Below, one piece after another: positions 6,099-62,906 of a stretch of DNA of 64,000 nt. The stretch lies in the sequence record PV764938.1. The stretch is one strand, 5' to 3'. Below the pieces are notes generated by a model, which was not told the DNA's origin, made no database searches, and saw only the letters and a list, made by a program, of their open reading frames with translations. The translations under genes and the position numbers were made by a program. Within the stretch, counting starts at the first letter, position 1, and every line of letters starts with the position of its first letter.

Positions 6099-7975
6099 TA
6101 GATTCCAATCCAGTCCTTACGATCGTCGGAACGTCCGCCGTTAAAGATGAGATCCAGTGTATCCTTCATGTTGCCGTCATTGACGATCGGGAACAATTCA
6201 GGGTTATCCAACGAATACTGCCAGTCCTCTTCCGTCAGCGTAGACAGACCCTTAGCACGAGTAATAGACCAACCCGAATGTGCTTGAGGATCGAAGTCCT
6301 GGTAGTTGTGGGAATACCAATACTTGCGTGTCTTGCCTTTCTCAGCGATGATGAATGGAGTCTTGAAAATGTTGATGAACGGATCCAGCTTCGGGTCGAA
6401 AAGCTCCGGCCAGAATGTGTGGAAGAAGTTGATCAACAAGGCACCGATATTCAAGCCGTCCGGGTCCATGTCGTGCGCAATGTAGACTTGACCGTAACGG
6501 AGATCCTCACGCTTTGCCTTCTGACCCACGATGAGTCCCAAGCTGTTCATGATGTCAGCGAGTGCCTTGTTCGCGATGACAACCTTGAGGTCTTCACCGT
6601 TGACGTTGAGAACCTTACCACGCAGAGCAAGACCACCATGGACTTCAGGATCACGCACCGAGCTCATACCCGAGATAGCGGATTCACCTTCTGCCAGGAA
6701 GAGCTTGCACTTGGTGCGGTCTTTTCCATTAGCGTCCATTAGACCAGCGACCTTGCTGCGGGCATTCTTCTTTGCCATCTTCGCAATGTCAGCGGCGTCC
6801 TTCTTCATTGTACGTTCGGAGCAACGCTTATAGATCTCTTCGATCCATTCCTTGTTGCGCTTGATAACGTCTCTGTATAGTTCAGGATCTTCGAGAGCCT
6901 TGCCGACAACCTTGCTGACTTCCTCGTTAATGAGGCGGGTCTTGGACTGGGAGTCAAAGTTTGGACTGTGCATGTTGGTGATGTTGTAGATCATCACGCC
7001 TTCAGTCACATCCGAACGGTTCGGGCTCAGCTTACGACGCTTGCTTTCCTTCTCTAGCGCACCCAACAGGTTACGATAGAAATCACGACGGAATGTTTCA
7101 ACATGAACACCGCCGTTGAATGCCGGAATGTTGTTGACGAGCGTGTGAGTGTGTTCGCCATCATCGAGGAAATTCGGTACAAGCCAGAAGCGAGTACGGA
7201 AGAAAGTGTCCTTGATTTCAACAGCGATCGGCTTGATCTTCTCGAACAGCGACTGCTCAGGACGCGGCTTAACTCGGATCTGGGTACCATTGAAGTAGAC
7301 TTTGATCAGCGGGTTTGCGATCGCGATTTCCGTTACACGGGAACGAACAAACTCCAACGGCAATGTTGTATCAGCGAACACCTTTGTGCTCAGCTTGAAT
7401 GCGACCTTGGTGCCTGTGAGCTCACCCTTCTTGTCGATGATCTTGGGTCCTGCTGCTACCAGTTCTTCACCAAGAGCCTCGTTACCCTCGGAGAAATTCT
7501 GGGTGAATTTCTTACCATCACGATGAATGGTCAGTTTGAAATATTCGGAACAGAAGTTAACGCCGGCTGCACCGATACCGTTGGTACCAGCGACTTCGCC
7601 GCGTGCTTCAAAGTTACGACCTGCACGAGCGTGGCTCAGCGCGAGAGTCGCAGCATGGATTTGATGTTCTTCATCCCAAGCGATCGGGATGCCTCGACCG
7701 TTATCCTCAACTGACATTTCGCGTGTTTCTTCATCATACGTGATGTCGATGCGATTGCCATGCCCGTGACCGACGACTTCATCCAAGCTGTTGTCGATGA
7801 TTTCGCGGAAAGCCGTATAAACTGCGGGAACCCACTTGAAGTTCTGTGGAACTGGCTTCAGTCCCTCATATGCGATTACGGTCTGTTCGTGTAGGGCACG
7901 AGAACCGAAATACATTTCTGTCTTCAAACGGACGTGAGAGTAGTCGGTGAGTTTTTTAATAGATTGTTCTGCCAT
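6098..7975 (-). CDS. gyrB: type IIA DNA topoisomerase, ATPase/TOPRIM subunit (GyrB/ParE/T4 gp39+60-like)
   Basis: GHKL motifs EIIDNSLDE, DNGRGIP, GTNGIG. TOPRIM LFLAEGESA, LRGKVLN, DMDPDG, RAKGL. Confidence 0.95.
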   Translation of the reverse strand: MAEQSIKKLTDYSHVRLKTEMYFGSRALHEQTVIAYEGLKPVPQNFKWVPAVYTAFREIIDNSLDEVVGHGHGNRIDITYDEETREMSVEDNGRGIPIAWDEEHQIHAATLALSHARAGRNFEARGEVAGTNGIGAAGVNFCSEYFKLTIHRDGKKFTQNFSEGNEALGEELVAAGPKIIDKKGELTGTKVAFKLSTKVFADTTLPLEFVRSRVTEIAIANPLIKVYFNGTQIRVKPRPEQSLFEKIKPIAVEIKDTFFRTRFWLVPNFLDDGEHTHTLVNNIPAFNGGVHVETFRRDFYRNLLGALEKESKRRKLSPNRSDVTEGVMIYNITNMHSPNFDSQSKTRLINEEVSKVVGKALEDPELYRDVIKRNKEWIEEIYKRCSERTMKKDAADIAKMAKKNARSKVAGLMDANGKDRTKCKLFLAEGESAISGMSSVRDPEVHGGLALRGKVLNVNGEDLKVVIANKALADIMNSLGLIVGQKAKREDLRYGQVYIAHDMDPDGLNIGALLINFFHTFWPELFDPKLDPFINIFKTPFIIAEKGKTRKYWYSHNYQDFDPQAHSGWSITRAKGLSTLTEEDWQYSLDNPELFPIVNDGNMKDTLDLIFNGGRSDDRKDWIGI

Positions 7976-8145
7976 AGGTGTTTCCAGTTTTCTTTGTAAT
8001 TTAAAGAGTTAGAGCCTTTAGTGTCAATTTTTGGTTTTCAGAGACCCAAACCGTTGAGTCACATAATAATTTATGCCTGAACCAAATTTAGGTTTGCAGT
8101 TGCACCAAAACATGCTAGTAGAAGAAACCAACATGAGGAAACCCG

Positions 8146-8511
8146 ATGGCTTATTTGGCTTATGAACTTTCGGCAAGCGATCGCACAAAGCTCGCAAGGA
8201 TATTCCCGCCGAAGTTTTCGGATTTCATCGGACACCACTGCACTTACAAATTTGGCGTGATGGCGGATGCACCGCTACCACCTGAGGCTGTTCTGCGTGT
8301 CGTTGGCTTTGCAAGTGATGATTCTCTTGAATGCCTAGTCGTCGATGTTGATGGTTCTATCCGTCGGCCCGATCGCGGTACATTCCATATCACTTGGTCT
8401 CTTGATCGTTCGAAGGGTCGCAAGCCCGTTGATTCCAACGAGTTGCTTCGTGGCGGATATACTCCGATCCGACCCATAACTGTCTCGGCGACGCCAAAAC
8501 TCTTCAAGTAG
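8146..8511 (+). CDS. 2H phosphoesterase-family protein
   Basis: Two H-x-T motifs (GHHCTY, TFHITW) about 50 aa apart in a 121-aa protein. Confidence 0.7.
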   Translation: MAYLAYELSASDRTKLARIFPPKFSDFIGHHCTYKFGVMADAPLPPEAVLRVVGFASDDSLECLVVDVDGSIRRPDRGTFHITWSLDRSKGRKPVDSNELLRGGYTPIRPITVSATPKLFK

Positions 8512-8514
8512 TCT

Positions 8515-8946
8515 ATGGAAGAAAATACCCAGCATAAGATGACCGTCGTGTCATACCCGGATTACCATGTTGATCCAGGTGCCACCCATATCCTCGTCGT
8601 AGGGGATTTCAAGTTTCAAGAGCAAGCACAGGATGCCATTGGTATCCATTGGCCTGATGCAGACGTCACATTGTATCGGGGCGATGCTGCAATTCCCAAT
8701 GTGCAATCGGCAATCGAACATCACACTTGGCTTTATTATCAGTTCAAGATGGCTAAGATCGTGATTGTCACCACAAAGTCATGGAAGTGGGTTTGGCCAG
8801 TCTTGGCTACCATCGATGGCGAAATATTCTTTGTGGATGATCAATCCGATAGCTTGTTTCTCCGCACTCTAAATTTGACATATCCGGGACGAGTGTTCCA
8901 TACTGCTGAACAGGCAGTAAAAGCTGTGGTTTCTACGCGCCTATAA
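8515..8946 (+). CDS. hypothetical protein
   Basis: 143-aa ORF co-oriented in operon. Confidence 0.6.
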   Translation: MEENTQHKMTVVSYPDYHVDPGATHILVVGDFKFQEQAQDAIGIHWPDADVTLYRGDAAIPNVQSAIEHHTWLYYQFKMAKIVIVTTKSWKWVWPVLATIDGEIFFVDDQSDSLFLRTLNLTYPGRVFHTAEQAVKAVVSTRL

Positions 8947-11343: not shown

Positions 11344-11436
11344 CCGCGTGAGACTTGGTTAGTCAGAGAGAGCTTATACCTCTTTTAGCCCCAGATTAGG
11401 GTTCCCGAGACAGTTCGATTCTGTCCACGCGGACCA
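11344..11436 (+). tRNA. tRNA, anticodon UAU (Ile-reading) with long variable arm
   Basis: CCGCGTG/CACGCGG-A-CCA acceptor; GAGAG-CTTATAC-CTCTT anticodon arm; GCCC/GGGT variable hairpin; GACAG-TTCGATT-CTGTC T arm. Confidence 0.8.
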
Positions 11437-18874: not shown

Positions 18875-19141
18875 ATGACGCCGGTACAACAGCTTGAGGC
18901 AATCTTCGCATATGTCCGTAAAAACGGCAAATACGTAGAGCGTGACTACAAGACGATCGGCGGTATGTGGATAGTGGATACTTGGGTCCTCAACGATATT
19001 AAAGTCCAACTGATGGATGAAGGTTCGACGCAAGCTGTAATTGCAGATGGCCTCAACGCTCATTCCACTTGTGGACGGCCTGTGAATTACTCACAGGGTA
19101 CTGAAGTTGAAATCACAGCAGTTTACGAAAGCCTAAAGTAA
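18875..19141 (+). CDS. hypothetical protein
   Basis: 88 aa, AAGGA RBS. Confidence 0.7.
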   Translation: MTPVQQLEAIFAYVRKNGKYVERDYKTIGGMWIVDTWVLNDIKVQLMDEGSTQAVIADGLNAHSTCGRPVNYSQGTEVEITAVYESLK

Positions 19142-19147
19142 GTTAGC

Positions 19148-19357
19148 ATGACCATGTTTATGACCAATGAAATCGCTACCGCGCATCGTGTTCCGACCTA
19201 CGAATTCGTGACTCCTGTTCTGCGTTCAAAAATCCGTGCATTCTCTGAAGCCGAAGCCATCGAACGCGTCAATGCCCTCTACATGGGATTCACCGATCGC
19301 GAAGGAACTTGGAAAAAAGTTGGCGATTTTGAATTTTCGTGGGAATCAAAGGCATAA
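19148..19357 (+). CDS. small hypothetical protein
   Basis: 69 aa. Confidence 0.6.
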   Translation: MTMFMTNEIATAHRVPTYEFVTPVLRSKIRAFSEAEAIERVNALYMGFTDREGTWKKVGDFEFSWESKA

Positions 19358-19403
19358 ATAGAAATAGCTGGGAAACGCCATGTGTGCGGATCTCGGTGAT
19401 GAT

Positions 19404-19478
19404 GCGGATGTAGCTCAGCGGTAGAGTCCCTGCTTGCCATGCAGGTTGTCGAGAGTTCGAATCTCTTCGTCCGCTCCA
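19404..19478 (+). tRNA. tRNA-Gly(GCC)
   Basis: GCGGATG/CGTCCGC-T-CCA; CCTGC-TTGCCAT-GCAGG; canonical T arm. Confidence 0.95.
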
Positions 19479-20130: not shown

Positions 20131-20355
20131 ATGGGGCATAGATTGATTACTGAAATGTATGAGCACGATGGCCAAGTCGAACTCGTCTACGGGTGCGATA
20201 CTTGGGAAGAAGCCGTGCGTATTCATGGCATCGCAACTGAACTTGGATACCTTTGCTATCCATCTCAAGCCGCGCTTGTCCGTCACCAATCCACATTCGT
20301 CCGAATCATCACCACCGATGATAAAGATCGCGTTATCTTGAAGCTTGCGCTATGA
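20131..20355 (+). CDS. small hypothetical protein, LKL-motif family
   Basis: Ends IITTDDKDRVILKLAL. Confidence 0.7.
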   Translation: MGHRLITEMYEHDGQVELVYGCDTWEEAVRIHGIATELGYLCYPSQAALVRHQSTFVRIITTDDKDRVILKLAL

Positions 20356-21404: not shown

Positions 21405-21480
21405 GACGGGGTGGCCGAGTTGGTTAGGCACTTCCCCGCAAGGGAAGGACACGTAGGTTCGAGTCCTCCCCCCGTCACCA
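21405..21480 (+). tRNA. tRNA-like RNA (nominal anticodon GCA, non-canonical anticodon loop)
   Basis: GACGGGG/CCCCGTC-A-CCA, normal D and T loops. Anticodon arm is CTTCCC-CGCAA-GGGAAG, with no U33. A73 instead of the Cys U73. Confidence 0.7.
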
Positions 21481-23964: not shown

Positions 23965-24771
23965 ATGAATGCGGTTGTAGGTTTCACAGTTGCCGAGCTT
24001 GAGTCTCGGCAACTATTTCCGATCTTTGCCAGCAACAGCGACGACGATATTTCCTTCTTCGTGGATTTTGAAGATCCGAATTGGAACGGAGACATCAAGA
24101 CGTATGTGCAGATGCTTGCGGCGAATCCAGAACTACTTGAGCGCACTACTTGTTTCAAGCGTTGTTCGAGTGCAACTAAGCTGAATCGCGAAGACTGTTT
24201 CTTTCCGATCCAGAGCTTTACTTTCACTACGAAGGGCGCCCGTGCAACGTGGGAAACCAGTGTAAAGGAAATCAAGAATCTAGCAAGTCGTGAGCAATCC
24301 CAAGCGTATCGTGCAAAGAACCTTCCGTTCCTTCGCATGTATGCGATGGGTGATCCCGAAGGTCGCATTCACTGCCCGATCTTTAACATTTGCATTGATA
24401 GTATCGAACTATTCGGAACTATTGTGAATGCGTGGGTTCAGCACCACTTTAGGTTCCTCAACGGCTTTTCCGTACATAAGGAAAACTTGGATCCCGGCGC
24501 AATACTTAGCTCAACCGACTTTAGTGTTCCATCGTCTCGGGCCTATGATGGCATCAAAGATATGGCTAGGACGATCTTCTTGAGCTCCACTGCGCATGAT
24601 GCACTCCACAAGATCAAGCGTTCCGGTGATATTGCCGATTATACCGTTGAGCAACTTCCTTGGGCTCTTCGCAGCGAAGCAAACTGGGAAGCATTTAACA
24701 CGTTTGTAATGTCCTACGGTTACGATCATCTCGGTGATTACCAGACTTGGTTCAACGAACAAAAGAATTAA
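23965..24771 (+). CDS. hypothetical protein
   Basis: 268-aa ORF, 1 nt after the upstream stop. Confidence 0.75.
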   Translation: MNAVVGFTVAELESRQLFPIFASNSDDDISFFVDFEDPNWNGDIKTYVQMLAANPELLERTTCFKRCSSATKLNREDCFFPIQSFTFTTKGARATWETSVKEIKNLASREQSQAYRAKNLPFLRMYAMGDPEGRIHCPIFNICIDSIELFGTIVNAWVQHHFRFLNGFSVHKENLDPGAILSSTDFSVPSSRAYDGIKDMARTIFLSSTAHDALHKIKRSGDIADYTVEQLPWALRSEANWEAFNTFVMSYGYDHLGDYQTWFNEQKN

Positions 24772-28990: not shown

Positions 28991-29209
28991 ATGTTTGATA
29001 AACTTAAGAAATGGTACGAAGATCGCTTCGTGGCCAAATACATCGTATACTATCGGTTCCCAAGCCGGTGGTATCCCGGCAAAGTCGTTGAGGGTCAAGA
29101 ACGCCCAAGTAGCCGAAACAATGCTCTACAACGGGCACGAATCGGCAACGGACTTTACGGAGATGGATCGCATTGGGTCAGGAAAGTAGAAGATGAACCG
29201 TCCAACTAA
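28991..29209 (+). CDS. small hypothetical protein
   Basis: 72 aa, probably near-leaderless after the promoter. Confidence 0.6.
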   Translation: MFDKLKKWYEDRFVAKYIVYYRFPSRWYPGKVVEGQERPSSRNNALQRARIGNGLYGDGSHWVRKVEDEPSN

Positions 29210-29765
29210 CACGTTCGTTGCAATCGATGAAATTGAGCGACGCATGAAGTCCGCGGTGAAGAAGTTCCATTCGGATCTTCTTAGCCTTCGCACGGGCACA
29301 GCATCGGCATCGCTTTTGGATTCCATCGTCGTTGAGGCCTACGAGACGACAGTTCCGCTTGCACAGGTCGCAACAGTGAGTGTGCTTGAGGCTCGCACGC
29401 TTGGTGTTTCTGTCTGGGACAAAGCCACAGTCAAGGCTGTGGACCGAGCCATTCGAGAATCCAAGCTCGGCTTGAGTCCAGTCGTGGATGGTCTTACCCT
29501 ACGTATACCTCTTCCGGCTCCAACCGAGGAACGTCGTCGTGAACTCGTTAAGGTCTCGAAGACATTTGAGGAAGCTTCGAAGGTGGCAGTCCGAAACATT
29601 CGCCGTGATTCGCTCAATCATATGAAACGGCTAGTCGGTGGTGGCACCATGGCCCAACACACTATGAGCTCGCTGAGCACCAAGGTTCAGGATCTCACCG
29701 ATAAGTATGTTGGTGAGATTGAGACGCTCCAAGCGGCCAAGGAAAAAGAAATCCTGACGGTGTGA
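29193..29765 (+). CDS. frr: ribosome recycling factor
   Basis: LRTGTASASLLD-x-I-x-V-x-x-Y, PLAQVATVS, VWDK, PTEERRRELVK, KVAVRNIRRD, KEKEILTV. Confidence 0.95.
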   Translation: MNRPTNTFVAIDEIERRMKSAVKKFHSDLLSLRTGTASASLLDSIVVEAYETTVPLAQVATVSVLEARTLGVSVWDKATVKAVDRAIRESKLGLSPVVDGLTLRIPLPAPTEERRRELVKVSKTFEEASKVAVRNIRRDSLNHMKRLVGGGTMAQHTMSSLSTKVQDLTDKYVGEIETLQAAKEKEILTV

Positions 29766-29784
29766 TTTTTCTTCCTATTTTAGG

Positions 29785-29812
29785 TTGACGCGTCCTAAAT
29801 TGGTGCTAAGTT
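29785..29812 (+). promoter_or_regulatory. promoter for the large ncRNA
   Basis: TTGACG-N14-GC-TAAGTT; TTTAGG/CCTAAA palindrome around the -35. Confidence 0.7.
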
Positions 29813-29818
29813 ACGAAC

Positions 29819-30647
29819 ATGAACAGCAAGCAACGAAGGGTTTCGGAACTTGCTGGACTAGAGTAAAGTCGGAGTCGGAGTAAGTGTGCGGCAAACACAA
29901 CTCGTCTCTAAAACGGGTGTCAAGCACGGAATGGACGCATTCGGTTGCAACGACAAGCAGTTCGATTCTGTTGATCCCGATTTCGGCTTCGCTTGCTAAA
30001 TTAGAAGTATCCGGGCAGTCATAAAGTGACCACTCCGGCGCAGGGTGAAAGATTCAAAGCTTGGGCCCGGATACTTCTACTTTAGTGGGAAACTGTAAAG
30101 GTAGTTTATCGGTGTAGGACGCCTGAGGGGCGGCTTTCGATGACGTTGGACTTAATAACTTGCGTACCCTAGGCAACTGCGCGAGTGAACGGAAAGATCG
30201 AGAGGGTAGGGCTTCGATGCCCGAACTACAGGCGGCGGTTGAAAATATACCGCGTCAGCCAGTGCATGGTGCGGGCGATAAAAAGCCCCTTGGTTCGAAT
30301 CCGGGACTACCGATAAACTTCCTTTACAGTTTGGGATAACTGCTTGAACGCTTCCTCGGTGTGGAGGATCCGTTATATGGTGATTCACTTAATTGCGTGA
30401 GTGCTTCGCCTAAGGATTGCAGTGGCTGAGCTAGGACAATGTCTACGGAACGCAACTGGGATAAAGTCCGAATAGCAGTTATCTCATTAAGTTTGGCCAG
30501 TTGAGGAAACTCCTGGCCTCTTTTCTAGGGGCGAGCAATCGCGAAACGAGTAGGAGCGGGATGTCAGTACCATTGGCGCCCGCAACCAAAGGAGTAGCGT
30601 GGGCTTATGAGGATGGTACCCTTCCTGGTTCAAGTCCAGGCGTCCCG
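29819..30647 (+). ncRNA. ~830-nt large structured RNA, GOLLD-like
   Basis: Perfect long-range helices 30002-16/30065-79 (15 bp), 30090-101/30321-32 (12 bp), 30104-13/30309-18 (10 bp) and 30335-44/30474-83 (10 bp). tRNA-like 3' module GGGATG/CGTCCC plus CCTGG-TTCAAGT-CCAGG. Size and 3'-domain words (CGATAAAC, ATAGCAGTTA, GCCAGTT, GCGAAACG) recall GOLLD from memory; not verified by covariance search. Confidence 0.72.
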
Positions 30648-30685
30648 GGTTTTATTTTGCAACAACAAGAATAATAAGAAAGCAC

Positions 30686-32608
30686 ATGATCAAAATTACC
30701 TTCCCCGATGGTTCTGTTCGCGAATTTGACCCGGTTCTCCTGGACGGGCATACTATTGCTAAGAGCATCAGCCCAAGTCTTCACAAAGCTTCTATTGCGA
30801 TGATTCTAAATGGGGAAGTAGTCGATCTTTCCCATATGATTATGGATCACTCCACTGTCGAGTTGCTCAAGCGTGGCGACGAGCGGGTCCTTCCAGTTAT
30901 GCGTCACAGCATGGCGCACATTCTTGCAGAAGCCGTCATTAACCTCTGGCCCGAAACCAAGCTTGGTGTTGGTCCATCGACGGAAAACGGCTTCTTCTAT
31001 GACTTCCATCGTGACACCCCGATCACCGAGGCAGAGCTTCCGTTGATTGAAGCGGAGATGCGCAAGCTCATCGCCGAAAATAAGAACTTCCTGCGTTGGA
31101 ATGATGTTCCGCGTGAGTCGCTTCTCGAAATGTTTGAGAATCAACCCTACAAGCAAGCGATTATGCAGACGCTCCCATCGGACGCGGAGATCAGCGTTTA
31201 CTGGCAGGGTTCGTATCCGGAAATGTGCCTGGGTCCTCACGTGGTGTCCGCGGGTCAACTCGGCAACAGTTTCAAGCTTGTTAAGGTTGCTGGTGCGTAT
31301 TGGAAGGGTGATTCCTCCCAGCCCATGTTGAGCCGTATCACCGGCGTATATTTCCCGGAACAGAAACAGCTGGATCAGTATTTGGTTCGTCAAGCCGAAG
31401 CTGAAAAGCGCGATCACCGCAAGCTCGGCAAAGAACTCGATCTGTTCCACTTTGAGGAAGCTGCACCCGGTAGTGTATTCTGGCATCCTAAGGGTTGGTC
31501 GCTTTTCCAAAAGCTTATCAACTACATGCGCGAGACTCAAAACGCCGCAGGATATCAGGAAGTCAATACTCCGGATATGATGGACAAATCCCTTTGGGAA
31601 ATCTCCGGTCACTGGCAAAATTATCACGCCAATATGTTCACGACAACGACCGAGGACGAGCGAGAATTCGCGTTTAAGCCGATGAACTGTCCGGGCCATA
31701 TGATGGTCTACAATCAAGGTATCCGCAGCTACAAGAGCTTGCCGCTAAAGCTGGCCGAGTTCGGTAAAGTCCATCGCTACGAGCCTTCTGGAGCCCTACA
31801 CGGACTTATGCGCGTGCGAAGCTTCACGCAGGATGATGCTCATATCTTCTGCACCGAGGATCAGCTTCTCGATGAATGCGTGGCCGTCAATAACCTGATC
31901 TTCAAGATCTACAAGGACTTTGGCTTCACCGACATTCGTGTAAAGTTGAGCACCATGCCTGAGAACCATATTGGTTCGGTTGAATCATGGGAGAAGGCAA
32001 CGAACGCGCTGAAGGATGCACTCGAGCATTTGGGTCAGCCCTACACGATCTTCGAAGGTGAAGGTGCTTTCTATGGTCCAAAACTCGAATACGTTCTGAC
32101 CGACGCAATCGGCCGTGATTGGCAATGTGGAACTCTGCAGGTTGATTTCAACTTGCCAGCGCGTTTCAATTCGACCTACGTTGACGCCAACAATAAGCGT
32201 CAGTTCCCGGTTATGCTGCACCGCGCAATGTTTGGATCCCTTGAGCGATTCACTGGTATCCTTATCGAGCATTTCGCAGGTATTCTCCCGGTATGGTTGC
32301 AGCCGACTCAAGTCGCAATCGTCACCGTAAGTGATTCGCCGGCTCAGGTCGAAACCGCCCAGCGTATTTCGGGTTTCCTGAAGAACTACAGCGTTTCGCA
32401 TGTTGTGGATGACCGCGTGGAAAACCTAAGTGCGAAAATCGCCGAACAGTTCAAGGGCAAGGTCCCCTACGTGCTGGTAATCGGCGATAAGGAAGCTGAA
32501 GAAAAGGGCGAAGTCGTAAGTGTTCGTGAACTCGGTGGTGCATCCTACCGACTACCGACTGACGATTTCCTCTATGAGCTATCCGCTGTTATTCGAGAAA
32601 AGCGGTAA
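30686..32608 (+). CDS. thrS: threonyl-tRNA synthetase (full length: TGS, editing, catalytic and anticodon-binding domains)
   Basis: RHSMAHILA, MCLGPH, RDHRKLGKELDLF, KPMNCPGH, GLMRVRSFTQDDAHIFC, GAFYGPK, WQCGTLQVDF, HRAMFGSLERF. Confidence 0.98.
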   Translation: MIKITFPDGSVREFDPVLLDGHTIAKSISPSLHKASIAMILNGEVVDLSHMIMDHSTVELLKRGDERVLPVMRHSMAHILAEAVINLWPETKLGVGPSTENGFFYDFHRDTPITEAELPLIEAEMRKLIAENKNFLRWNDVPRESLLEMFENQPYKQAIMQTLPSDAEISVYWQGSYPEMCLGPHVVSAGQLGNSFKLVKVAGAYWKGDSSQPMLSRITGVYFPEQKQLDQYLVRQAEAEKRDHRKLGKELDLFHFEEAAPGSVFWHPKGWSLFQKLINYMRETQNAAGYQEVNTPDMMDKSLWEISGHWQNYHANMFTTTTEDEREFAFKPMNCPGHMMVYNQGIRSYKSLPLKLAEFGKVHRYEPSGALHGLMRVRSFTQDDAHIFCTEDQLLDECVAVNNLIFKIYKDFGFTDIRVKLSTMPENHIGSVESWEKATNALKDALEHLGQPYTIFEGEGAFYGPKLEYVLTDAIGRDWQCGTLQVDFNLPARFNSTYVDANNKRQFPVMLHRAMFGSLERFTGILIEHFAGILPVWLQPTQVAIVTVSDSPAQVETAQRISGFLKNYSVSHVVDDRVENLSAKIAEQFKGKVPYVLVIGDKEAEEKGEVVSVRELGGASYRLPTDDFLYELSAVIREKR

Positions 32609-32674: not shown

Positions 32675-33685
32675 ATGGTCGCATCACGCACGCTTATGGC
32701 AAAGGGATCCAAATGGATCGTTAATGCCGACTTCTCCGCCGAAAACCATTACGGCGCTGAGTATCAATGGCAAAAGAATGCCAAGGGCGGGCAGGATCTC
32801 GTCCAGACCAAGAAGCACATGACGGACTTCAAGAAGGGTGAGATCATCGTGATCACCGACAAGTCCTCAACGTATCATCCCCGCACCTATGATAAGGGCA
32901 TCTTCTATCCGGTCACCTGCGAAGGTCGCAAGGGCCAGGGCAGCTTCGAGCTCAAGGATATCTCCCAGTATTTGGACCTGCACGAGGAAGTGCTCCAGTT
33001 GATCTGGGTATTCTACTCGGCCAAGATGGGCGGATACATCGAAAAGATCCCCTATTCGACGTATCACGACGGTGACAGCTACGAAGCTGCTCAGAAGACC
33101 GGCGGCGTGCTCTTCAACGCGAAGATCACCAAGGCCATGAAGAAGAAGCGCAGCCAGGATACCAAGCAGTATCTGCTCAGCCATTCCGGTTATTACGACG
33201 GCATCGATACCAGCGACATCTACTACGTGTTCGAACCCGGTGGCAAAAAGGTCGACTTCCCGGATGACCTGGTGATCCAGGAACTCAACAAGATCACGAA
33301 GGAAGTCCGCTCGGAGACCAAGGCCAGCGACTACCTGACGGAAGCATTCCGTTTGCGTCCGCTGACACTCAAGTACGGCAGCGCCATCCGCAGTGTCTTC
33401 AAGGACATGGAAGAAAAGGGCGAGTCCTACACCACGCTCCTCATGTTCCAGGACACCAGCGAGGACGTCGATCAGTACGACAAGTCCAAGCCCATCGATC
33501 AGCTCAAGACGGAATTCAAGGCGTCAAAGCCCGCGAAGGGCACCTACATCATGAAGTCCGACTATCGCACGGTAGCCTTCGCGTTCAAGAACCGCAACGA
33601 TGCTCTCATGTTCCGACTCAGCTACTCGGGCGATTTGTCCTCACAACTGGTCGATGCGGAAACCCTCGCGGAAGTCTCCAAGTGA
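32675..33685 (+). CDS. hypothetical protein with C-terminal FRL motif
   Basis: 336 aa; FAFKNRNDALMFRLSYS near the C-terminus. Confidence 0.8.
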   Translation: MVASRTLMAKGSKWIVNADFSAENHYGAEYQWQKNAKGGQDLVQTKKHMTDFKKGEIIVITDKSSTYHPRTYDKGIFYPVTCEGRKGQGSFELKDISQYLDLHEEVLQLIWVFYSAKMGGYIEKIPYSTYHDGDSYEAAQKTGGVLFNAKITKAMKKKRSQDTKQYLLSHSGYYDGIDTSDIYYVFEPGGKKVDFPDDLVIQELNKITKEVRSETKASDYLTEAFRLRPLTLKYGSAIRSVFKDMEEKGESYTTLLMFQDTSEDVDQYDKSKPIDQLKTEFKASKPAKGTYIMKSDYRTVAFAFKNRNDALMFRLSYSGDLSSQLVDAETLAEVSK

Positions 33686-34005
33686 CACGACGCAAATACG
33701 TCAACCGCGTGGAAATCGAACATATTGATTCACCCATTCAGTCAATGAATGGGTGGAAGAATCACGAGCAGTTTGAGTACCGCGTGAGTTGGCGTATCTA
33801 TACGAAGGACAATGGTGAGGAACTCAGAGACTATCGCATTTGTGCAGAGCTTGATATGCCCATCATTGTGCCGGAGATTCAAGAATGGTTTGGGCCCTAT
33901 GGCCCGAACGGTCGCTGGGACATTGATTACGCCTACATGTACCTGTTCTTCCGAACCCTGACGGATATCACTGAATTCAGACTCAGGATAAATTTACCAG
34001 GATAG
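33682..34005 (+). CDS. hypothetical protein, FRL-motif family
   Basis: Ends LFFRTLTDITEFRLRINLPG. Confidence 0.7.
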   Translation: MTRRKYVNRVEIEHIDSPIQSMNGWKNHEQFEYRVSWRIYTKDNGEELRDYRICAELDMPIIVPEIQEWFGPYGPNGRWDIDYAYMYLFFRTLTDITEFRLRINLPG

Positions 34006-34008
34006 GTG

Positions 34009-34062
34009 TTGACGTCTTCCTATTTGCTGTTATATTAAGGGCAACAAAGGAGATCGGACATG
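34009..34062 (+). promoter_or_regulatory. promoter plus conserved RBS cassette
   Basis: TTGACG-N14-GT-TATATT ... AAAGGAGATCGGACATG. Confidence 0.7.
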
Positions 34063-49196: not shown

Positions 49197-49273
49197 TGGT
49201 GCGAGCCGAACATGGTGGACGGGACTCACTGTTAATGAGTACATGGTAGGTTCGATTCCTACCGCATCAGCTA
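49197..49273 (+). tRNA. tRNA-Asn(GTT), ends CTA instead of CCA, inside a 12-bp extended stem
   Basis: ACTCA-CTGTTAA-TGAGT; TGGTGCG/CGCATCA-G-CTA. Confidence 0.82.
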
Positions 49274-49366: not shown

Positions 49367-49442
49367 GGGGTAGGGGCTTGGGTACCCGGATTTTGCTGGC
49401 AGCGAGATAGCCTGGTCGGTTCGATTCCGATCTACTCCACCA
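49367..49442 (+). tRNA. tRNA-Ala(GGC)
   Basis: CTGGCAG loop; GGGGTAG/CTACTCC with G3:U70; A-CCA. Confidence 0.82.
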
Positions 49443-62817: not shown

Positions 62818-62906
62818 GGAGCATTATACAGCCTGGGAACGCTGTCGGGGCTTGCTAAGCCTTTGGATCCGAAAGGGTTAGGGTTCGATTCCCTATTGCT
62901 CCTCCA
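62818..62906 (+). tRNA. tRNA-Ser(GCT), atypical (5-bp D stem, U73)
   Basis: GGGGC-TTGCTAA-GCCTT; ATCC-GAAA-GGGT variable arm; T-CCA. Confidence 0.8.

Follow-up and report, generated by a model that had tools for sequence, protein, structure and literature searches.

The 64,000-nt stretch of DNA analysed here (hereafter the window) comes from Sinorhizobium phage Phosso (PV764938.1, 469,473 bp), a jumbo phage whose host is S. meliloti. The genes for ribosome recycling factor (RRF, gene frr) and threonyl-tRNA synthetase (ThrRS, gene thrS) are separated by a gap of 920 nt, whose sole annotation is a 37-aa hypothetical protein (XYS97721.1, 29886-29999). This gap carries a conserved, structured, non-coding plus-strand RNA of an undescribed family, whose core, made of domains D2 to D4, is closed by helices of 13 to 24 bp. 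It also carries a separate, separately conserved 3' element containing a T-arm. Position 29766 of the window is position 401766 of the record, and window positions are given unless stated otherwise. The main features of the locus are as follows.

29193..29765, plus strand: frr, ribosome recycling factor, the upstream neighbour in every phage carrying D2-D4
29785..29812, plus strand: promoter-like site, sigma-70-like, with -35 TTGACG (29785-29790), a 16-nt spacer and extended -10 TGcTAAGTT (29804-29812)
29819..30526, plus strand: giant structured non-coding RNA of ~708 nt, made of a 5' hairpin, D1, the D2-D4 core and a terminator-like hairpin
29996..30085, plus strand: D2, a 21-bp closing helix with a three-hairpin junction inside; six closing-helix pairs with double changes
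30090..30332, plus strand: D3, a 24-bp closing helix with a large multi-branch domain inside; several pairs with double changes in helices 5-15
30332..30486, plus strand: D4, a 13-bp closing helix with three or four hairpins inside; five closing-helix pairs with double changes
30495..30526, plus strand: intrinsic-terminator-like hairpin, GGCCAGTTGAG-GAAA-CTCCTGGCC, then the T-run TCTTTTCT
30686..32608, plus strand: thrS, threonyl-tRNA synthetase, the downstream neighbour in every phage carrying D2-D4

Conservation and structure of the RNA

Homologues were reached via the nearest relatives of ThrRS and RRF in a large protein collection. The same frr-RNA-thrS arrangement was found in five further lineages, from soil and compost metagenomes:

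L002/L003: 469,944-bp contig, GCA_902726335.1
L018-L020: ENA and Logan contigs
L021-L023 and L012: compost metagenomes
L024: SRR9417644
L026: 98.7% identical to Phosso

Identity of the RNA core between lineages was 84-86%, compared with 74-78% for the adjacent thrS DNA. All carriers known so far are Phosso-like jumbo phages of soil and compost, and together they make up one small clade. Phosso alone was matched when a phage database was searched by blastn, and IMG/VR gave no match with ThrRS; the motif AAGGATTGCANTGGCTGAGC was absent from IMG/VR and had four chance matches in GTDB genomes. A search for paralogues with nhmmer covered the window and the initial 50 kb of Phosso and found none, and the ThrRS of L012 was absent from an exact-sequence gene index. 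Two other candidates, L008 and L009, were rejected for their unrelated context.

The core alignment contained six sequences, and its RNAalifold structure (166 pairs) was derived from those same sequences. Over the predicted pairs, 98.4% of the cells were standard-paired, and 38 of the 166 pairs (59 cells) had changed on both sides with pairing kept. Shuffled controls gave 15.9 +/- 2.6 such pairs, the observed value being reached in 0 of 500, and sliding the 3' partner by 1-3 columns left between 0 and 4. The covariation score was 0.241, against ~0.055 in the slid controls, and a three-sequence alignment behaved alike. Compensatory changes were present in all three long closing helices as well as in the terminator hairpin. 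An earlier note on this DNA had proposed that an alphaproteobacterial jumbo phage here encodes a giant, structured RNA that is non-coding and partly tRNA-like, and had named covariation among homologues as a way to check it; the proposal is supported by this covariation. The 708-nt RNA has a minimum free energy of -273.6 kcal/mol (z = -5.6), far beyond chance. The plus strand folds 48 kcal/mol more stably than the minus strand, an excess expected when G.U pairs matter, and GC skew across the region ranges from +0.13 to +0.20. A terminal helix joining the 5' and 3' ends of the RNA was considered and rejected, being broken, by eye, by a substitution in L021.

The long-range helices noticed earlier were recovered as inverted repeats: one of 24 nt closes D3 (30090-30113 paired to 30309-30332, 96%), one of 21 nt closes D2 (29996-30016 paired to 30065-30085, 95%) and one of 13 nt closes D4 (30332-30344 paired to 30474-30486). 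Within D3, an 11-nt loop contains the invariant palindrome CCTAGG (30168-30173), which changes in the flanks extend to the 8-nt UCCUAGGA in L002 and L018. D4 contains a nearly invariant 26-nt stretch, CTAAGGATTGCAGTGGCTGAGCTAGG (30410-30435), in which two positions vary. The D3 loop, read as CCUAGG, is also complementary to CUAGG in this D4 block (30430-30434), and the position flanking the complement is U-A in L002/L018, C-G in L021 and C.A elsewhere. This complementarity hints at a tertiary contact between D3 and D4, or at an intermolecular kissing loop. A hairpin within D3 that had been read as a T-loop (30289-30305, CTTGG-TTCGAAT-CCGGG) did not hold up: it is lost in 3 of the 6 sequences, giving G.G and U.U, while another register at the same site, GGTTC/GGACY, is kept in all six.

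The promoter-like site was kept in all six sequences, with the -10 as TGnTAAGTT, in line with the earlier proposal of an own promoter, though a simple consensus scan did not flag it. The terminator-like hairpin was likewise not flagged by a simple terminator scan. It is kept in all lineages, with GAAA, CTTCGG, CTACGG and GTTA among its loops, and three pairs of its stem change on both sides. Judging from these two elements, transcription would start near 29819 and terminate at 30495-30526, producing a putative RNA of ~708 nt with its own promoter and terminator. The single RNA of ~830 nt that had been envisaged, ending in a tRNA-like module, is thus to be split in two: the terminator-like hairpin ends the ~708-nt RNA, and the T-arm module lies beyond it. 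Between this hairpin and the thrS ATG, no promoter-like site was visible in a simple consensus scan.

A protein-coding role for the gap was rejected. When frames were compared across relatives, no conserved open reading frame (ORF) was found between frr and thrS, as the description of the gap as ORF-free would have it. The longest ORFs (minus strand, 78 aa; plus strand, 59 aa) were not kept in frame in relatives, and substitutions in the gap lacked 3-base periodicity (49/42/35). The annotated 37-aa protein overlaps the D1 cloverleaf described below. As its frame shows no conservation as an ORF, the call is probably spurious, which corrects the annotation.

Two other phages were compared at this locus. 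One is a more distant 480-kb IMG/VR phage (L006, IMGVR_UViG_3300020156_000001) without frr or thrS, in which a neighbouring protein is 55% identical. At the same slot (7966-8516), it has a promoter of the same type (TTGACT..TACATT) and a structured RNA of ~275 nt (z = -4.8), together with the terminator hairpin and the 3' module found in Phosso. This ~275-nt RNA was tried as a homologue of the giant RNA and rejected, since it is unalignable except at the terminator. Another terminator-like hairpin is found at ~8490-8516 of L006 (GGGCGGGCC..GCCCGCTCTTTCT) and suggests yet another small transcript. The second phage is Atu_ph07, whose syntenic site has no frr, no giant RNA, promoter, short RNA, terminator hairpin or 3' module. 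What is found there is a ThrRS-like fragment of 236 aa only.

The optional cloverleaf and the separate 3' module

Upstream of the core, the RNA begins with a hairpin and a domain folded as a tRNA:

29824..29855, plus strand: 5' hairpin, outer stem CAGCAAG...CTTGCTG and inner stem CGAA/TTCG; missing from L024
29866..29989, plus strand: D1, tRNA-like, with a 13-bp leader/trailer helix as its closing stem; its minimum free energy fold is a cloverleaf
29885-29899, plus strand: D1 D-arm, stem UGUG/CACA, with GG in the loop
29901-29917, plus strand: D1 anticodon-like arm, loop C-U-CUA-A-A
29919-29954, plus strand: D1 variable arm, ~36 nt, hypervariable in sequence
29956-29972, plus strand: D1 T-arm, AGCAG-TTCGATT-CTGTT, canonical and conserved

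One pair of the 5' hairpin shows a double change, from G-C to A-U in L021. In D1, pairing is kept in 99% of the cells (five sequences); two pairs, both in the closing helix, change on both sides, and the D and anticodon arms are invariant. Much of tRNA geometry is present: the cloverleaf itself, a UUCRA T-loop, G53-C61, GG in the D-loop and a 7-nt anticodon loop with U33. The T-loop hairpin that had been noticed at this place is therefore real, and it is conserved. The acceptor, CGGAGUA/GAUCCCG, pairs at 5 of 7 positions, with A.C and A.G mismatches, in the register of a class-II tRNA. It continues into a covarying 10-bp leader/trailer helix (GCUAG/CUAGC in L021), and aminoacylation of D1 is unlikely because its acceptor end is locked in that helix. 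D1 did not match the Rfam tRNA model (RF00005) at E<=10, and ARAGORN in default settings gave no call, with the variable arm either whole or trimmed; we therefore rejected it as a canonical tRNA. In L024, both D1 and the 5' hairpin are replaced by a hairpin-looking segment of ~45 nt. The cloverleaf is an optional insert.

The 3' module follows the terminator-like hairpin and includes these elements:

30528..30658, plus strand: separate 3' module of ~120 nt (30528-30649) plus a T-run (30650-30658)
30528-33 with 30641-46, plus strand: acceptor-like helix, GGGGCG with CGTCCC, 5-6 bp, compatible in all five module-bearing sequences
~30558-30581, plus strand: hairpin H2, with an ACC loop and three double-change pairs
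30588-30640, plus strand: nearly invariant 52-nt block, including the invariant T-arm CCTGG-TTCAAGT-CCAGG (30624-30640)

This module is present in Phosso, L026, L021/L012, L024 and L006, and absent from L002 and L018. L006 keeps it almost unchanged, 52-nt block included, behind its much shorter RNA. The 3' T-arm module is a separate element, conserved separately from the giant RNA. The acceptor pairing first proposed for it, CGGGATG/CGTCCCG, is not conserved. Two segments of the module, GTACCAT and ATGGTAC, are complementary. In L006 both are altered and still match (GGACCAT/ATGGTCC), which points to a pseudoknot or to alternative folding. Compared with Rfam, the module had chance-level matches only, the best being mascRNA at E = 2.7, and no match to the tRNA model at E<=10.

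A small ORF of the 3' module with a Shine-Dalgarno-like motif was also considered. It is weakened by the change of AAAGGAG to AACGAAG in L024, and by its frame relative to thrS, which differs among the phages. In L021 (RCUQ01000214.1, 4918-6915), an ATG within the module is in frame with thrS; gene callers there extend ThrRS to 665 aa, and the added N-terminus is really the T-arm element. In Phosso, this ATG does not share the thrS frame.

Family tests and the GOLLD RNA of Phosso

At gathering score, the Rfam models reported tRNAs alone in the window, and at E<=10 the RNA region and its homologues gave chance matches only (IMES-2, snoRNAs, mascRNA). The model of GOLLD (RF02032, gathering score 150 bits), the family of which the earlier note had taken the RNA for a member or relative, had no match at E<=10 in Phosso 29700-30750, in L002 or in L006. 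The ROOL model, which we take to be RF03087, had none at gathering score, nor at E<=10 in these three phages, and the T-box riboswitch model, presumably RF00230, had none at E<=10 in 1-kb and 151-nt searches. No tmRNA, standard or permuted, was found by ARAGORN in default settings or by Rfam. Under relaxed settings, ARAGORN proposed a permuted tmRNA, rejected because its tag (AGCQYHWRPQPKE, then a stop) is interrupted or shifted in L021 and L006, as well as a tRNA(cta) with a 358-nt intron and a tRNA-Pro with a 36-nt intron, both rejected for poor stems or unconserved features. The frr-thrS RNA belongs to no Rfam 15 family, and no published description of it was found in the literature searched.

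Outside the window, Phosso has a bona fide GOLLD RNA, in an unannotated 1-kb gap (record positions 33003-34050). It matches RF02032 over the full model with 186.6 bits (E = 1e-52, record 33533-34001), and its linker holds a canonical tRNA (54 bits, 33598-33669). It has its own promoter (TTGCAA, 17 nt, TATAAC) and terminator, CCCCGCAAGGGGCTTTTT. The negative result obtained for the RNA of the frr-thrS gap (hereafter the gap RNA) is thus meaningful, the true GOLLD serving as a positive control from the same genome. A Smith-Waterman comparison of the two RNAs scored 16 (mean of shuffles, 15.1). The covariance model made for D2 matched itself alone, with no match in the Phosso GOLLD locus, L006 or Atu_ph07. 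The two RNAs share only a resemblance of promoter and of 5' start, both starting ..GAACATGA..., and we rejected the gap RNA as a paralogue of the Phosso GOLLD on the basis of the Smith-Waterman comparison and the D2 model. At the level of detectable homology, membership of the gap RNA in GOLLD is effectively refuted. The earlier note had itself held that a non-significant GOLLD score would make the RNA a candidate new class; with such a score obtained, we regard the locus as carrying a candidate new class of giant phage RNA, together with a separate, highly conserved T-arm element.

At the place of the Phosso GOLLD, gene number 80 is skipped in the record. More unannotated gaps of 300-650 nt with skipped gene numbers are found at record positions 24024-24670, 19109-19415 and 29493-29778. 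Between 37 and 41 tRNA genes are counted in the window by Rfam and ARAGORN, mostly in one array at 48-63 kb, and the true tRNA gene nearest to the gap RNA according to ARAGORN, at 21405, is ~8 kb away. Four tRNA genes called by ARAGORN (11344-11436, 49197-49271, 49367-49442 and 62818-62906) were not reported by Rfam at gathering score, and one of them is a 93-nt tRNA-Ile(tat). Conversely, the annotated tRNA-Met (record 20219-20293) escaped ARAGORN, as did the tRNA within the Phosso GOLLD. As for the neighbouring genes, the closest proteins to the phage RRF and ThrRS outside the phage clade are alphaproteobacterial (~54% and ~57% identity, respectively), which suggests that frr and thrS were captured from hosts.

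Possible roles and likeness to known systems

The reading that we prefer, with moderate confidence and by analogy, is that the gap RNA would be a stable, trans-acting ornate RNA, a functional analogue rather than a homologue of GOLLD, aimed at the tRNA and translation machinery. Under this hypothesis, the RNA would be made as a stable transcript from its own promoter to its own terminator. Its large, rigid, multi-domain scaffold would display an optional tRNA-shaped handle, as GOLLD can with a linker tRNA, and copies of the RNA might associate through the invariant palindromic loop CCUAGG. The targets met during infection would be those that recognise the shape of a tRNA: the ribosome, RNase P, the CCA-adding enzyme or tRNA-directed host nucleases.

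Several points weigh against this preferred reading. The promoter, the transcription start and the termination are all deduced. The covariation is shallow, as only five distinct lineages are known (78-86% identity), and the fold on which it is scored comes from those very sequences. That copies of the RNA associate is a guess, since palindromes of 6 nt often arise by chance. L024 lacks the cloverleaf, so that a tRNA-mimic mechanism cannot be the core function. Since thrS lies directly downstream of the core in every core-bearing phage and has no visible promoter of its own, the RNA may be a 5' leader at least in part. Lastly, calling it an analogue of GOLLD explains little, because the function of GOLLD is itself unknown.

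Very large ornate RNAs are rare in bacteria and phages, the known examples being GOLLD, ROOL, OLE, HEARO and raiA. More tentatively than the functional analogy with GOLLD, we envisage that the gap RNA might be the founding member of a new class of giant ornate RNAs, convergent with GOLLD and ROOL, in which a self-assembling RNA-only scaffold with a tRNA-shaped handle would act on the translation or tRNA machinery.

The main rival, which we hold possible but somewhat less probable still, is that the RNA is a cis-acting leader or attenuator of thrS. The RNA, its terminator and 3' module above all, would then form the 5' untranslated region of thrS and control read-through or translation by sensing tRNA-Thr or ThrRS, on the lines of the E. 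coli thrS operator or of a T-box. The immediate proximity of thrS in all five lineages carrying D2-D4, with no promoter-like site in between, fits such a role, as does the H2 loop of the 3' module, which presents the threonine codon ACC. The complementary GTACCAT and ATGGTAC, the latter containing UGGU, could also allow alternative or pseudoknotted folds, with the compensatory change in L006 in their favour. However, the RNA has a promoter and a terminator-like hairpin of its own, it matches no T-box or other leader family at E<=10, and the anticodon-like loop of D1 reads CUA, which is not a threonine anticodon. Moreover, the elements come apart: the 3' module is gone from L002 and L018, which retain the giant RNA and thrS, and L006 has a terminator and a 3' module without thrS or frr nearby. 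We know of no other aminoacyl-tRNA synthetase gene whose leader is ornate, ~700 nt long and built of three closed domains.

Another explanation would make the gap RNA the precursor of small tRNA-like RNAs, from which D1 (amber-suppressor-like, perhaps derived from tRNA-Tyr) and the 3' module would be released by RNase P and further tRNA-processing enzymes, the big domains being structured spacers. A precedent is the tRNA cluster of phage T4, from which the stable species 1 and 2 RNAs arise as well. D1 does fit the class-II register, with 5 of 7 acceptor pairs, a two-nt gap to the D-stem, G53-C61 and U54-U55-C56-G57-A58, and the T-arm of the 3' module stands on an acceptor-like helix of 5-6 bp that starts right after the terminator T-run. 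AP-J-162, a relative, is reported to have a tRNA(CUA) and no tRNA-Tyr (PMC11242549); its supplements do not state the location of its tmRNA or misc RNA. Nevertheless, we consider this explanation unlikely. Neither D1 nor the 3' module has an Rfam tRNA match, the relaxed ARAGORN models are poor, the acceptor of D1 contains two mismatches and lies within a leader/trailer helix that covaries, and L024 dispenses with D1. TAG makes up ~10% of stop codons, with no sign of recoding. The strongest covariation is found in the supposed spacers, D2-D4, rather than in the tRNA-like parts; this location of the constraint makes both the precursor and the remnant model below less likely.

The last two alternatives are very improbable. 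A highly divergent GOLLD member would account for the similar size, the phage origin, the tRNA-like insert and the likeness in promoter and 5' start, but it is contradicted by the silence of the GOLLD model in three homologues and by the Smith-Waterman and D2 comparisons with the Phosso GOLLD, which that same model recognises over its full length. A non-functional remnant, of decaying tRNA genes or of a pseudogenised protein gene in a tRNA-rich genome, would explain the tRNA-like fragments and the 37-aa ORF placed in the gap by annotators, but is disfavoured because the gap is more conserved than the neighbouring coding DNA, and also by the 38 covarying pairs, the conserved promoter and terminator-like hairpin and the lack of any conserved reading frame.

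The function of very large folded RNAs of bacteria and phages is a long-standing question, to which the gap RNA adds a further, unrelated example. It sits in an isolated, culturable jumbo phage whose host is genetically tractable, and a true GOLLD with an embedded tRNA resides in the same genome. Two giant RNAs can thus be compared side by side in the Phosso-S. meliloti pair, which could reveal the role of such RNAs, and whether the repeated pairing of giant phage RNAs with tRNA-shaped inserts has a functional basis.

Among the closest known systems is GOLLD, reported as phage-encoded, located near tRNA islands, sometimes with tRNAs in the linker, recovered in ribosome pull-downs and assembled in homo-oligomeric cages (10.1101/2024.12.08.627333). 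Both RNAs are giant (700-900 nt for GOLLD, ~708 nt for the gap RNA, with four closed domains), multi-domain and phage-encoded, the gap RNA may, like GOLLD, be tied to tRNAs, and the GOLLD of Phosso has a sigma-70-like promoter resembling that of the gap RNA. Whereas the GOLLD linker can hold a real tRNA, the gap RNA holds a non-canonical tRNA-like cloverleaf. Unlike a GOLLD, it has neither a match to the GOLLD covariance model nor sequence similarity; it is co-resident with a true member and is known from one small phage clade. GOLLD assembles as a homo-oligomeric nanocage (14-mer), and the only lead to anything similar in the gap RNA is its invariant palindromic loop. ROOL, a large ornate RNA of phages and prophages that is often near tRNA islands, also forms RNA-only cages (10.1101/2024.12.08.627333). 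It differs from the gap RNA in that no covariance-model match and no sequence or architectural correspondence were established between them.

Other comparisons concern the position of the RNA and its tRNA-like parts. The E. coli thrS operator mimics the anticodon arm of tRNA-Thr, and T-box leaders sense tRNA. The gap RNA resembles these in that it immediately precedes thrS and has tRNA-like elements together with a terminator-like hairpin. It is however several times longer, with its own promoter and no T-box model match; in L006 the 3' module is found in the absence of thrS, and in L002 and L018 thrS is not preceded by it. tRNA-like modules within or after larger RNAs are known from the tRNA-like domain of tmRNA, from the bacterial Y RNA YrlA, from MALAT1/mascRNA and from the species 1 and 2 RNAs of phage T4. 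The 3' module differs from these by the absence of a significant family match and by an unconserved candidate tmRNA tag ORF, and no Ro/Rsr gene was seen in the annotation read. It is like them in having a T-arm stacked on an acceptor-like helix and attached to a larger RNA, and by this analogy RNase P or another tRNA enzyme might plausibly recognise it.

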